DNA of 64,000 nt from Macrostomum lignano (lineage: Eukaryota). This document shows, piece after piece, positions 5,609-61,452 of this stretch; within the stretch, counting starts at the first letter, position 1, and each line of letters opens with the position of its first letter. The stretch is from the NCBI GenBank assembly GCA_002269645.1, contig NIVC01000186.1:372001-436000 (forward strand). Reading direction: 5' to 3'. Both the position numbers and the translations under genes were made by a program. The notes below the pieces were generated by a model that searched no databases, had not been told where the DNA came from, and saw only the letters and a list, made by a program, of their open reading frames with translations.

Positions 5609-6045
5609 GTGGCATAGACAAAGGGGGATATGGGGATAGGCCTATATCCCCTCATGGGCCTAGTCGGCAAAGGCAGATTTAAGGGGGGGTGGCCCCTAAA
5701 TAGCTTGACAGATAATATTGTGCTGCTAAAAACCTAAGTCTATGCCTACAGCCTACTAAGCTTGATTTTTCGCCCCCTACATACTTTTTTGTACCGCTAA
5801 GCTGAATTTTTGTCTCCTATATCCAATGTTTGTACCCTTGCTTAAAAATTGGTGCTTCTTATACTTATGTTGGCACCCTAAACCTAAACTGCCCCTCCCC
5901 CCAAAAATGAAACTCTAGATCTACCACGGCTGGTCAGTATTCAATTTATAGCACTTAATTATCACTGTGAACTGCCTCTGAAGTAGTAGCAGCTACTCAT
6001 ATCCCTGCATCCCCCCTGTAAGAAATTCCTGGCTACACCCCTGCT
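5609..6045. mobile_element. Decayed, possibly nested MITE-like remnants
   Basis: Degenerate inverted ends (AGTGGCATAG... and ...CTACACCCCTG) and an inner pair (GGCAGATTTA and TAGATCTACC); poorly conserved. Confidence 0.3.
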
Positions 6046-6699
6046 TATACATATATATAATCATCATATCATGCAAATTATACAAACAAAATGAAAATGG
6101 CATAGGCCTATACAAACAAATGGCATATGGCTTTTACAGCGGTCCGTGTAAACACAGCAACGGACGCAACGGACCGCAACGGACCGCAACGGACCGCAAC
6201 GGACCTCAAGAAACTGCTACAGACTTAAACGAAGTAAAATCGTACCTACAAGTATAAGAAATTAGATTTTTGCCTAGCGTTAGCTGTTAGATCGTTTTTA
6301 TATTTATTGCTTTGGTACTTTTTCATTCTGCATGTATTTTAACGATTCAAAAACGAGAGGTAGCATAATAAAAGTCGTTAAAATTCTTTATATATTTTGT
6401 TTATAATACGTTATTGCAATTTTTAAAGAATGTTTTGGTCGAAATAATAAAAAATTATGAAACGTTTGTTTTAGTCCTAAAAACTCCAAGTCTAGCAATA
6501 AGGCGGAAAAATTGCTAAATCAAGGCACGAATTAATTTATTTGTTTGCTTACTCATTCATAATTCATGATTCCTTGTAAGACGAGGTTAGCAACGTGGTT
6601 CCGCCCGTCGAGCTGCTGCTTTCCTTGGCCAATCCGATCATTCCGGGTGGCGCCGGGGACCGTGAGGCACACTCCCATCGAGCCTCAGCCGTACCACAG

Positions 6700-8110
6700 A
6701 GCATGCTTCCGCGTGCTTCGGGTCGGGACACTGAACTGCCGCAGTCTCAAGGCCGCCTGTTGGAGAAGGCTGCTGGCGCAGCTAGCGCTCGACCTCAGAT
6801 GCGATGTCATCTTGCTGCAAGAGGTGTCCATCTGGGCCGACCCGGGAATTCACTGTGAGCACTGTGCGGCTCAACCCTCTGGTCGTCGGCGAGCCAACGA
6901 TCGTGGCCGTGGAGGAGTTGGAGCTCGATGATCGGACCGAAGCTGTAGCAGAGCTTTCGCTGCAACTCCCTGTCTGACCGCGGCTGCTTCGCGGCCGGAA
7001 CGCTCGCCTGTTCTGCGCGTATGCGCCTCTGCCACCCGACTAATTGACGAGGCTCAAGTCTTCTTCGAGCAGCTCTCGGCCTAGATGAAGGAGACGGCGC
7101 AGCGTGACGCGGTTTTGCGTAGGTCCAAGCGGTCGCTGTTTATGACACCGCACGAGAACGGCAACACCGGAGCGCTGGAGGATGTCCTGGAGACGCAGAA
7201 CATGGTGTTGCCAATACGGCCGCTGCCGTAAGCCACCCGGTAGGCTCGCGACCTTCGTGGTCTGCATGCGGCCGGAATGCAACGCGGAGGCAGGCACAGC
7301 TCGACCAAGTGCTTGTACTGTACGTTTTCGTGAGCGCCGCCGCGCCGTCAACTGCCGCCCCATCACGCCGCTGGCTCTGCGGTCCGACCACCGGCTCCTT
7401 GGTCTGCGACCTGCGTGTATGCGATCCGCTTTACCGTCCACGGCGCTACTACCGTGCACTCAAGGACAACCTAGGTGCGTCGCAATTTCGCTAGTGCCTT
7501 CGTCAGCGCGCTTGGTGCTTCAGGGAGATACGCTTGCGCCGTTCCTGTTCGACCTGGTGCTTTACTGGGTGAACTGCTCTCCTTCTAACGACGACGGCTT
7601 CCTGTTGCAGCGACGCGCAGGTTGACGCCAACCGGAAAGGCGGCTCTGATGATCTCGCCCTGCTGTTCTCGACCACCGAGGGCGCCCAACGCCTGCCGGA
7701 TGACATCGAGGCTGCAATTTTCAGCCGAAGCGCCGACGGACAGGTGACGAAGTTTCCGTGCTATCAGCAATTCGTCTACCTCGGCGGTCTGGTGCTTGAC
7801 GTTCGCGAGGACCTGCGACGTCGCCGTGGTCTTGCCTGGGCTGCCTCCGTTCCGTGAGGGTTGTCTTGCAGTCTGAGGCAATCGATCCCGACCGCCAGAG
7901 GGCGACGTTGTTCCAGGCGGTGATCGAGACCGTCCTGTTGTACAACGCCGAGACCTGAACGCTGACGGATTCGCTCGAACAGCTGGTCGAAGCGGCACAC
8001 GCTGGCCTGCTGCGCCGCCTTCAAGATCGGCTACGAGCGAGTCACCAATGCGGCACTCTACGAGCGTATCGCCGCACCTGCCTGTCCCATCCCAGAGAAC
8101 TGTTGCACCG
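6700..8110 (+). pseudogene. Degenerate RTE-clade-like non-LTR retrotransposon ORF (APE + RT fragments)
   Basis: VGTLNCRSL (6722) and LQE (6815) of APE; QGDTLAPFLF (7521) and DDLAL (7648) of RT; VLLYNAET* (7932, W to stop). Many frameshifts and deletions. Confidence 0.85.
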
Positions 8111-8334
8111 TCGGCGACTCCAGCTAGCTGGCTGAAGCTGCAGGCACCCTACCGGCGGGGGCAGGCGCGCACTCGGCGTTTCGTCGACTGCCTGCTGGCT
8201 GATGCTGGCGCCCCGGACACTGCCGGCGGTGTGGTCTACGTTCGCGCCCAGGCCTTGAAACGCGCCTTGTGACGTTGTCTGCTGACTGACTGACAACGTA
8301 TTTTGTTGTTGCTGTTGTTAGTCTTCACACCCGC

Positions 8335-9585
8335 CCTCCGGAGTTGCGACCGCGTCTTCTCTTGATCCTCGAATTGCGACATCCCTCTCATCATCAAGGA
8401 CGTCTCCCCCGGTCGACTGCATCAATCATCGAGGCTAAAAATCATCAACTGCAATCATCTACAAAGACTGCGACGACATCATCCCAAAGCCTACAGCTGC
8501 GAAGCACCAAAGCCGATTCGGTCACTGTGGATTACCTGGTCTCCGGCTGTTAATTTTCTGATTGGTTGGGTGAGAGGGAGGCTACCTAGACTTGCGTGAT
8601 CGGGTGATTCCTTAATTATCTGTCCCCTATTTCAGTAGTAGCTGGATCAAGTGCACACTTGCTCATTGTTCAGTAGTGCTGTGTAACTTGAGGCGAAATC
8701 ATTCAATAATACTGTTAGTAGTCTATACTCCGAATAAATCTGAACTAAGTGTGAAGTGTGAAGTAAGAAGGTTCAATCCGACAATTATTCGCCGATGGCT
8801 CAAATGAGGAGTTATTAAGCTACATGTATATGTAGTAGGCGCTGGTCACAGTGGACCAATGGCAAGCGCAGTTCTCAGTCAATAAATTTATCTATCAGTT
8901 AGCGAAATTGCCAATAGTGCAAAATCGGTGCAAGAGATGTACACTCTAAAATCGCCAAGCGGCTCGGATATAGTGAATCATGCGTTCTCTGAAGTTCGAG
9001 TTAGTCTATCATCAGGGCTACGAGAGGCTGGTTGGCGCGTTGAAGGCCAAAAGTACAATCTCTCTTATTTAGCAATGTAATAGTACATACAGTATGTAGC
9101 TACACCTTAGACTCGCCACCGCAAGAATCCCCTGCACAAGTCCCCTCTGTCCCAGCATGACCAATGCGATATATAGCTAGCAGTGTCCCTTATCATCGGC
9201 TATGACTTCGAGATTGACAGCAAAAAGACACTAGTTGGCAGGTAAGTGCAAGCCCCTTTTAGTCGGAATTGCCCGATTTCGAAAGTTCCGGTTTGGTGAG
9301 CTGGTGCGTATATACGGGCTGCTGGCAGCGGGTTAGTTAATCTGCGCGGATTTGCTTATCTCTAACCTTCAAAATTCTCCCTGCGCCTTGGGTCTCGATT
9401 GACTCGCTGTCCCTCTCTTACGTACGTAACTATATAGCACCCAGACTGCTCGACACAGACCAAAACTTCCTTTGGGGCTGACCATCTGACAGGAGTGAGG
9501 GGACGACAGGGCTCTAATTGATTCATTTCTGAGACCTGAGGCCCAATTGAGGCTTTTAACGCCGGAAAGGCCGAAACCCATCATA
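8335..9585 (+). repeat. Dispersed ~1.25-kb repeat, copy A (inverted relative to 11583-12780)
   Basis: Collinear, diverged reverse-complement match to 11583-12780, e.g. ATCATCGGCTATGACTTCGAGATTGACAGCAAAAAG. Confidence 0.85.
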
Positions 9586-59907: not shown

Positions 59908-59922
59908 GTTCAGTCCTAACTT

Positions 59923-60110
59923 GGAACCTTCAGCACCCTCCCGAGTCCTTAGATTGAAGCTTCAGCACCCTCCCGAGTCCTCAGATGGAACCTTCAGTAC
60001 CCTCCCGAGTCCTCAGATGGAACCTTCAGCACCCTCCCGAGTACTCAGATGAAACCTTCAGCACCCTCCCGAGTACTCAGATGAAACCTTCAGCACCCTC
60101 CTGAGTCCTC
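59923..60110. repeat. 32-bp minisatellite, about 6 copies, directly after the MetAP1 stop
   Basis: Unit GGAACCTTCAGCACCCTCCCGAGTCCTCAGAT. Confidence 0.92.
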
Positions 60111-60737
60111 GTAATAGTCATTTTATACATTGTGCAGCAGTTGCTCTTCCATATCTCTACTGGCATTGCGTTATAGTAGATTAGGAAAACTTGTTTTTCC
60201 ATAATATTTGTACTCAGCGTATTATTAATATCTGTTATATTGCTGCATTTCCTAATTCCCATTAGTAAAAGTTATTAAGCAGACGCAATTTTGTGTCCAA
60301 GTCCAATGTACGTGTATTTTTTGAGTTGTTTGTTTAGTCAATCCACAATGCAATATTTTGCAGTTTTACAGCTGTGTTTGCCTCCATTCTCTTTAGTGTT
60401 ATATAAATGACATGTTTAGGTAGTGTAATGTTATGTACAAACACAAAAAGAAGATTGCTTGCAATAATTGCGTGTATAGCTGAAAGAGAAATAAACTTAT
60501 TTTAATTAACATATTTTAAACGCATTAGCATTCTCATCATTTTCTTTTAAAGATGTAGCCACAGTCAGGCCCGATGTATAGATAACACATTTTATATGGC
60601 CTAGTAATGATTTTCTATATTAAGTATCGTATACAAACCTAAACTGAACTAGTTGCTGCCAAAATTATTTATACAGTACGTATTAATATCGGTTCGCCTT
60701 ACTTGCCTGCTCGCTTTTCAGTTGCTGCAGCCTGTTT

Positions 60738-60774
60738 GTGTGTGTGTGTGTGTGTGTGTGTGTGTGTGTGTGTG
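60738..60774. repeat. (TG)n microsatellite
   Basis: Dinucleotide run. Confidence 0.95.
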
Positions 60775-61452
60775 CAAGTGCGTGTGTGCATCACCATCTT
60801 GTCTCTGTGCCTCTGCTGCCTACAATTTCGCTTGCTGTGCATACATGTACTGTGCATAGTGCATCTTCTGAACTGGCTAGACTAGACACTGAGGTTTATA
60901 CTGCGTATCACCGGATTTCGTTTCAGTAGCTACGAGCTAAGCTAGTGATAGTTTTGTCAAAGTTGGTGTAATTGGAAAAACATCTTATATATTTTTATAC
61001 CGTGTCTATTGGCTAATCCACTAATGCTACAGTAACTAAATGGGCCACTTAGTTATATTTTCTTGGTAATAACACTTCTCTACTTTGAGTTCAGTAGCAA
61101 GGAAGCGTGTGTAAGCTATTTTTCGAAAAGAAGTGAAGTTGGTGTGACTTGCAGACGTAAACAACTCGCTATTGGTGCAGCCGTAATGTACGAGTACATT
61201 AGTTAGCGCCCATTGGAAATGTACATAGGTGGAGCTTTAGGTTAGGCGGAACACTGCGAGGAAGGCAATAAAAATTGAGCAGCGGGGCTGGCGTAGAGAT
61301 TTTACGCGGAAAGACACGGTTGGGGAGGGGGGCTCCGCAACGGGGGTAAGAGAGCCAATTGTCGAATCTAATGTAATGTATGTACATCTTAACAGCTTTA
61401 GGCGAAGATTTATTAAGAAAAGTAAAAATTCCATGCATGTGGTCCGTGTGTT

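Follow-up and report, generated by a model that had tools for sequence, protein, structure and literature searches.

Over-represented words at TA dinucleotides in a 64-kb stretch of the Macrostomum lignano genome and their possible origin as transposon excision footprints

Introduction

The non-coding DNA of a 64-kb stretch of the genome of the flatworm Macrostomum lignano (contig NIVC01000186.1) carries scattered copies of a few 8-nt words in which four bases lie between two TA dinucleotides, and the question that they raise is how the same four bases came to stand at so many separate TA sites. Two of these words, TACATGTA and TAGGCCTA, had been noticed in a reading made from the letters alone (here the sequence-only reading), which proposed that they are scars left by the excision of TA-targeting transposons and that old scars were used again as targets. 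We examined the words in the whole 64-kb stretch (hereafter the window), to which all counts given below refer. The excess of both words is real and larger than first noted, and a third, non-palindromic word of the same shape accompanies them. We interpret the words as excision footprints of TA-targeting, Tc1/mariner-type cut-and-paste elements, and put the probability of this interpretation at about 0.6.

Enrichment of three TA-framed words

An exact count over the window gives 16 copies of TACATGTA and 10 of TAGGCCTA. The sequence-only reading had reported at least 15 and 10 respectively; every coordinate that it listed is correct and its second count is confirmed, but a TACATGTA site at 3056 was overlooked. 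It had also set the expected numbers at about 2 and about 1, whereas the means in 100 dinucleotide-preserving shuffles are 0.78 and 1.03 (maxima 3 and 4), so that the excess is stronger than stated. Outside tandem arrays the expectation under a Markov-3 model is 0.84 for TACATGTA (16 observed) and 0.66 for TAGGCCTA (10 observed), and under a Markov-5 model, itself contaminated by the motif, it is 8.0 and 1.6. The comparison with a Markov background, suggested as a genome-wide check and made here for the window, upholds the enrichment at both orders.

We then ranked all 8-mers outside the arrays, on both strands, against their Markov-3 expectation. Below (CA)n the list begins with TACATGTA, its one-base shift and TAGGCCTA, and continues lower down with more shifts, CAATCAGA/TCTGATTG (14 against 2.13), poly-C, and the complementary pair TACGAGTA/TACTCGTA. 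When simple repeats and overlapping shifts are excluded, TACATGTA, TAGGCCTA and TACGAGTA/TACTCGTA are the top three 8-mers outside arrays. The third word has the same TA-N4-TA shape and is not a palindrome; it occurs at eight sites (0.76 expected) with unrelated flanks, five in one orientation and three in the other. Within the TA-N4-TA class the three words are several orders of magnitude in p ahead of all others, the next word having a p of about 3e-3.

The enrichment is specific to the TA frame. We scanned twelve frames of flanking dinucleotides, with core lengths from 2 to 6 bases. Outliers of such size appear in TA..TA alone, and the 11 control frames contain no independent one; the matches in other frames (ATGTACAT, CATGTACATG and GTACATGTAC) are shifted readings of TACATGTA. 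Outside the tandem arrays a TA..TA frame surrounds 16 of the 176 occurrences of CATG and 10 of the 219 of GGCC, and among the 16 palindromic 4-nt cores an excess of such framing is limited to these two.

The sites represent about 14 independent loci for TACATGTA and about 9 for TAGGCCTA: the sites at 9867, 9873 and 9879 belong to one (CATGTA)n run, those at 13655 and 13664 are adjacent, and those at 39158 and 39180 are 22 bp apart. All-against-all BLAST of the 60-nt flanks returned only the overlap of neighbouring sites and two chance matches of 12–13 nt, with the exception of the site at 39158, which is located in a short repeat. The words are thus not part of a dispersed repeat family, since the flanks of the sites are unrelated and not alike, as they would be among its members.

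The sites, together with their unexpanded counterparts and variants with a longer core, are as follows (strand in parentheses, with a dot where none is assigned).

3056..3063 (.): TACATGTA, absent from the earlier list
8821..8834 (.): TACATGTATATGTA, 12 bp inserted where the inverted paralogue has a single TA (12287-12288)
9084..9098 (.): TACATACAGTATGTA, 15-nt palindrome opposite the TACATGTA of 12028 in the paralogue
9785..9792 (.): TACATGTA
9867..9886 (.): TACATGTACATGTACATGTA, three overlapping sites in a (CATGTA)n run
10031..10044 (.): TACATGTACTCGTA, a CATG word and a CTCG word with one common TA
10786..10793 (.): TACATGTA
12028..12035 (.): TACATGTA in repeat copy B
17899..17906 (.): TACATGTA in the last 31 bases of the open reading frame (ORF) 17180-17929
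21402..21413 (.): TACATGCATGTA, CATG core doubled
31192..31199 (.): TACATGTA
35836..35843 (.): TACATGTA
39158..39165 (.): TACATGTA within a short dispersed repeat, opposite CACATGTA in the paralogue (about 31805)
39180..39187 (.): TACATGTA, directly past the end of homology with the repeat copy 31750-31828
48508..48515 (.): TACATGTA
60842..60849 (.): TACATGTA
5637..5644 (.): TAGGCCTA
6103..6110 (.): TAGGCCTA, 30 bp left of transposon X (see below)
10410..10417 (.): TAGGCCTA
10455..10462 (.): TAGGCCTA
13655..13671 (.): TAGGCCTACTAGGCCTA, two TAGGCCTA sites 9 bp apart
47408..47415 (.): TAGGCCTA
48979..48993 (.): TAGGCCTATAGGCTA, a TAGGCCTA site followed by a copy one base shorter
55694..55701 (.): TAGGCCTA, +6 relative to the TA at 55087-55088
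55834..55841 (.): TAGGCCTA, +6 relative to the TG at 55191-55192
55087..55088 (.): unexpanded TA in the paralogue, empty site for 55694
12287..12288 (.): unexpanded TA in the paralogue, empty site for 8821
4706..4713 (+): TACGAGTA
17059..17066 (+): TACGAGTA
22520..22527 (+): TACGAGTA
48876..48883 (+): TACGAGTA
61189..61196 (+): TACGAGTA
18744..18751 (-): TACTCGTA, reverse complement of TACGAGTA
22839..22846 (-): TACTCGTA
15007..15015 (+), 46058 (+), 60931 (+), 32552 (-) and 62429 (-): TACGAGCTA, 5-nt core variant
5481..5489 (.), 10328 and 11549: TAGGCCCTA, 5-nt core variant
55771: TAGGGGCCTA

Exact inserts at single dinucleotides in paralogous repeats

For five of the sites, the surrounding stretch is repeated as a paralogue elsewhere in the window. 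The pair 55035-55292 / 55642-55951 includes two TAGGCCTA sites, each an insert of exactly 6 bp: the site at 55694 stands opposite AAG-TA-TAAC at 55087, a single TA, as had been proposed, and the site at 55834 stands opposite a TG at 55191-55192, a comparison additional to the three indels claimed from inspection. In the inverted pair 8338-9544 / 12775-11623, which is 79% identical, the site at 8821 is an insert of 12 bp at the TA of AAGC-TA-GTAGG (12287), and the TACATGTA at 12028 stands opposite the 15-nt palindrome at 9084; both of these correspondences had likewise been described. All three informative indels are exact (+6, +6 and +12 bp at a single TA, TG and TA respectively), and in 3/3 informative comparisons the arrangement is that of a Tc1/mariner footprint, in which the insert lies between duplicated TAs and the empty allele has one.

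Distribution and clustering of the sites

Outside tandem arrays there are 34 sites among 3311 TA dinucleotides, or about 1 per 100 TA, and there is none at the 659 TA inside the minisatellite or microsatellite arrays that make up about 20% of the window. The observation that no site is in a coding exon is essentially right, in that a single site (17899) falls within a coding-like long ORF, close to its end. A hot spot of 10 sites is found at 8-12 kb, a region of nested repeats.

Compared with TA sites drawn at random, the sites are more clustered at scales of 10, 50 and 500 bp (P no greater than about 0.001). Four pairs lie within 10 bp of each other where 0.28 would be expected for random TA sites (P 0.0005), and the close pairs include two different words on one TA (TACATGTACTCGTA at 10031). 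There is a (CATGTA)4 run at 9863-9886, and units are doubled at 8821, 13655, 39156 and 48979; the other sites are single units, a pattern unlike the head-to-tail runs with whole-unit copy variation of a hexanucleotide microsatellite. Abutting scars would reflect re-insertion into scar TAs, and the proposed re-targeting of old scars agrees with sites that cluster and abut more than random TAs, but the (CATGTA)n run and the +12 site are equally explicable as slippage.

Variants and decay of the words

Shorter and longer relatives of the three words are also more frequent than expected. TACAGTA/TACTGTA is found 18 times against 6.8 expected (p 2e-4), and there is a mild excess of TACATA/TATGTA (35 against 20.4); TAGGTA/TACCTA is found 22 times against 12.7, and TAGGCTA/TAGCCTA 12 times against 5.6. 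Among the longer forms, TAGGCCCTA has three copies (0.24 expected), TACGAGCTA five (0.26), TACGAGCGTA two (0.03) and TACATGCATGTA one (about 0).

One-mismatch neighbours of TACATGTA are in excess among transition products only (TGCATGTA, 8 against 1.9; TATATGTA, 5 against 1.9; TACGTGTA, 3 against 0.7), a halo that looks like the neutral decay of a once-exact word. No excess of one-mismatch neighbours is seen for TAGGCCTA and TACGAGTA, which may therefore be younger or constrained.

Interpretation as excision footprints

Footprints of this kind are already known from Tc1/mariner excision. As we envisage the process, an element would insert at a TA, duplicate it and sit between the two TAs. At both ends the transposase would cut the non-transferred strand a few bases into the element, giving the flanks short 3' overhangs of element-end bases, and end joining would seal them to leave a scar composed of TA, 2-4 element bases and TA. 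A palindromic core could be produced by two routes, which cannot be told apart on these data: two bases may be contributed by each end (CA+TG, GG+CC), or a self-complementary 4-nt overhang (CATG, GGCC) may allow the flanks to anneal and religate to one invariant word. Because the scars from non-palindromic ends are heterogeneous, a word count would favour families that follow the second route. The duplex formed from a non-palindromic CGAG end would contain mismatches, and its repair would yield CGAG or CTCG, both of which are present here. The occurrence of a non-palindromic third word in both orientations fits element termini and not a process that writes palindromes.

The best reading is that at least three families have been active, with ends beginning CA or CATG, GG or GGCC, and CGAG(C), and a CAG-ended family has probably added TACAGTA and TACTGTA. 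The GG..CC-ended TA-targeting family is hypothetical. The cores are compatible with known end types in the case of CA and CAG (Tc1 and Sleeping Beauty) and of CGAG (Minos); TACATGCATGTA (21402) and TAGGCCCTA offer a thin hint of ends beginning with CATG and GGCC(C), which they fit. We infer from these patterns both that element ends are the source of the inserted bases and the size of the stagger. The scar interpretation of the sequence-only reading is supported in part, by the inserts of 6 and 12 bp at TA or TG, the unrelated flanks and the avoidance of coding sequence; it is not matched by any source element or transposase found in the window.

Observations that weigh against excision footprints

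Several observations speak against this interpretation. The 64 kb contain no inverted-repeat element that is flanked by TA and has CATG, GGCC, CGAG or CAG termini, and a Pfam scan of non-genic ORFs of at least 65 aa at about 1-21 kb and 41-64 kb revealed no transposase domain. We know of no TA-targeting family that starts with GG or GGCC. A density of about 1% of TA would demand very many fixed cycles of insertion and excision. That two of the three cores are palindromes is unlikely for four random terminal bases, and this surplus calls for either a contribution of two bases by each end or a bias of detection in favour of uniform scars. Indels were compared in paralogue pairs only, which give no direction of change, and in one further comparison, that of the site at 39158 with CACATGTA at about 31805, the difference is a substitution and not an indel. 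Finally, the base following the word is not random: it is C in 6/8 and CA in 5/8 cases for TACGAGTA, C at 9/16 sites for TACATGTA read on the + strand, and T at 7/10 sites for TAGGCCTA. Ascribing this bias to a family-specific target-site preference is ad hoc. We also considered a 3-bp duplication of the form TAC-NNG-TAC, as suggested by the frequent trailing C, and rejected it on account of the T that follows TAGGCCTA in 7/10 cases.

The search for source elements comprised scans for terminal inverted repeats (TIRs) flanked by TA, both generic and for CATG, GGCC, CGAG, CAG, CCAGG, CA and GG ends, which gave nothing convincing; among these, the TA-flanked families ending in CA..TG and GG..CC that the sequence-only reading had predicted are absent from the 64 kb. 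The sole match in the Pfam scan was the zinc finger of methionine aminopeptidase 1 (MetAP1), and Rfam and ARAGORN scans of the window returned nothing. Elsewhere in M. lignano, DD37E/MS elements of the Tc1/mariner group have been reported (PMC10379824).

Two pairs of candidate element ends were examined and rejected. The pair 8492/12625, in which TA is followed by CAGCTGCG, lies inside a longer inverted duplication and is not an element end because homology extends to 8338/12775. In the pair 39031/43174, in which TA is followed by CATGCC, the similarity extends beyond the TA and host exons are enclosed. The latter sequences belong to a short repeat with three copies starting TA-CATGCC, at 31720 (+), 39031 (+) and 43174 (-); in the window this repeat alone is a candidate element flanked by TA with a CATG end, and its other end could not be defined. 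The copies at 39031 and 43174 are alike outside the TA, which is perhaps no element boundary.

Alternative explanations

The alternative that survives best, though we consider it unlikely, is that TA-flanked and mostly short non-autonomous elements with CATG or GGCC ends were lost by host deletion between their identical terminal tetranucleotides, giving TA-CATG-TA. A TIR that starts with a 4-nt palindrome presents the same four bases directly at both ends, and deletion at this microhomology would yield exactly such words; moreover, one of the three copies of the TA-CATGCC repeat has a TACATGTA no more than about 150 bp further on. Host deletion leaves TACGAGTA/TACTCGTA unexplained, as an element with CGAG at one end has CTCG at the other and no direct repeat, and it does not account for TACAGTA. 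No full element of the required kind is present in the window, and the similarity between the copies at 39031 and 43174 runs outside the TA.

Host repair or replication might instead write short fixed sequences at TA, for example by polymerase-theta templated insertion or by hairpin opening, and the general excess of short palindromes (29 perfect 12-mers, where Markov simulations give about 13), the 15-nt palindrome at 9084 and the lack of a source element in the window would all be in keeping with this. A palindrome-writing process of this sort was the alternative offered by the sequence-only reading, but we disfavour it because the enrichment involves only 2/16 palindromic 4-nt cores and also a core that is not palindromic. 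An origin by hairpins (P-nucleotides) requires that the empty allele already contain one half, TAGG or TACA, but that at 55087 reads AAG-TA-TAAC, and the words lack the pattern left by hAT, Transib and RAG-like systems, a palindrome that varies between sites and of which one half pre-exists. Templated insertion would draw on neighbouring sequence, which varies, and would not place the same four bases at unrelated loci. We therefore regard an origin in host repair as quite improbable.

It is also very improbable that selection has maintained the words in non-coding DNA as functional palindromic sites bound by dimeric factors. In favour of such a role, perfect palindromes account for two of the words, TAGGCCTA and TACGAGTA lack a surplus of one-mismatch neighbours, and TACATGTA is described as a promoter motif in Phytophthora (PMC11134190, PMC3520976), so that a site of this kind may have a function in certain organisms. 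Many of the sites, however, are in transposon debris and introns, with the hot spot in the nested repeats at 8-12 kb; paralogous repeat copies differ by the clean presence or absence of 6 bp; and the sole common feature of the three unrelated cores is TA..TA, with different words abutting and sharing a TA.

Microsatellite birth and slippage of a 6-bp unit (CATGTA, GGCCTA) has the least to recommend it as a general explanation and is scarcely credible, since slippage cannot create the first unit, leaves the occurrence in a TA frame only unexplained, and does not fit sites that are mostly single units without a neighbouring copy and whose empty alleles are TA only, but it probably contributed to local runs such as the (CATGTA)4 run and the doubled units.

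Comparison with known transposition systems

If the words are excision footprints, they share some features with those of several described systems and differ in others. In footprints of Tc1/mariner elements, TAs enclose the 2-4 nt with which the element begins or ends, and the canonical footprints of Sleeping Beauty are TACAGTA and TACTGTA (PMC6943129). The likeness to systems of the Sleeping Beauty and Tc3 type lies in the duplicated TA around terminal bases of the element, in a scar of a few bases, and in two complementary versions from one mismatched overhang duplex; the exact 7-mers are themselves enriched here. The dominant words in the window differ in carrying four inserted bases and not three, and in that two of them are perfect palindromes.

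Minos, a Tc1-family element of Drosophila hydei, leaves a characteristic 6-bp footprint (PMC3386967, PMC10992017). It shares with the present words a scar of +6 bp at TA, but that scar was seen at experimental loci, whereas here there is an excess of words, and neither a Minos-like element nor a transposase was found in the window. The Minos scar is reported, by Arca et al. in 1997, to consist of TA plus the four terminal bases CGAG/CTCG, which would be exactly the third word in its two orientations. We take TACGAGTA/TACTCGTA to be of the Minos footprint type, and the 5-nt form CGAGC presumably also matches the Minos end.

Tc1 of Caenorhabditis elegans has CA..TG termini and duplicates TA, so that retention of both 2-nt overhangs would give TA-CA-TG-TA and loss of one would give TACATA/TATGTA, which are mildly enriched here. 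The geometry of its 2-nt staggered cut is said to have been worked out by Plasterk in 1991 and van Luenen in 1994. The 6-bp form dominates in the window, while for Tc1 scars of 4 bp are the ones commonly reported. By analogy only, the invariant words also recall piggyBac, in which cohesive overhangs pair perfectly and the donor site reseals to one invariant sequence; in that case the pairing bases are the TTAA target and excision is scarless, whereas here bases of the element would leave a 6-bp scar.

From the literature that we searched we know of no genome region in which scars are the most over-represented words, no case in which 6-bp palindromic scar forms dominate, and no GGCC-type scar. 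For TACATGTA and TAGGCCTA themselves the search returned only the Phytophthora promoter motif and primer sequences, and nothing for flatworms. A more specific version of the footprint interpretation would be that undescribed TA-targeting families have palindromic terminal tetranucleotides (CATG, GGCC) and a 4-nt stagger, so that self-complementary overhangs religate without processing to one invariant 6-bp scar, with about 1% of the TAs of the genome marked and the scars forming the most over-represented words in unique DNA. We offer this version tentatively and consider it doubtful.

Should the pattern hold genome-wide, scars rather than elements would be a major, countable record of past DNA-transposon activity in Macrostomum, with word counts giving the number of hops per family, the mismatch spectrum their age, and clustering the extent of local hopping. 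The scars would also be a substantial source of small indels in non-coding DNA, and they would reveal the end sequences of families with high mobility, past or present, in a model flatworm that still wants tools for transposon-based transgenesis. Should it not hold, the words would be a local curiosity of one repeat-rich region.

Other features of the window

A DNA transposon of about 4.1 kb, element X, occupies 6140-10222; its TIRs consist of GGTCCGTGTAAACAC followed by a subterminal (GCAACGGACC)n array. On both sides it is bordered by a 9-bp target duplication without mismatches (CTTTTACAG at 6131-6139 and 10223-10231), of Mutator-like or Merlin-like size, and it splits a stretch rich in TAGGCCTA and TAGGCCCTA (5481, 5637 and 6103 on one side, 10328, 10410 and 10455 on the other). 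Beyond it, at 10965-11480, a unit of about 22 nt (GGGGATCGTAWAACGAAAGTGA) has at least six occurrences in both orientations, including a 92-nt hairpin-like inverted repeat at 10965-11056; these look like subterminal binding-site repeats of some element.

A short repeat present at 22541-22800 and, in reverse, at 46470-46740 has two copies that are about 80% identical and a tRNA-like head (GTAGTCTAGTGGTTAAAGCGTCGGACTCACGA...GGTTCGATTCC). It is probably a tRNA-derived short interspersed element, in which ARAGORN calls no tRNA. The copy at 22541-22800 is flanked by TACGAGTA (22520) and TACTCGTA (22839).

A young-looking retrotransposon without long terminal repeats occupies 49397-54620. Its ORF1 encodes 491 aa, and its ORF2, with a single in-frame TAA at 52803-52805, encodes an endonuclease, a reverse transcriptase and an RNase H; its closest relatives are M. 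lignano proteins with 76-84% identity. The element is free of the three 8-mer words and has a TACAGTA at 50994. For a retroelement ORF of the window, an RNase H protein on a 2.7-kb metagenome fragment is 57% identical.

The host exons in the window include thrombospondin-repeat exons, an SLC9B2-like exon and a MetAP1 exon that is 98% identical to an M. lignano protein. Together with the relatives of the retrotransposon, these exons identify the window as animal DNA, from M. lignano or a species very close to it. Tandem arrays with units of 4-93 bp cover about 12.5 kb (20% of the window), and many of them are in introns of the thrombospondin-repeat gene at about 22-37 kb; examples are a 27-mer with 56 copies at 24456-25975 and a 23-mer with 72 copies at 28981-30636.

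The excess of perfect palindromes seen among 12-mers goes beyond the words discussed here and extends to shorter lengths, with 247 8-mers against about 185 and 69 10-mers against about 49 in the same simulations; examples are TTACGTACGTAA at 9418 and TGGGCTACGTAGCCCA at 18157. Low-complexity stretches with the letters of the GGCC word are present at 11549-11580 and 13672-13720 (TAGGCCCTAGGGCTAGGCTAGGGCTAGG and GCAGAGGCCAGGCTGGCCAGGGCCATGGCC).

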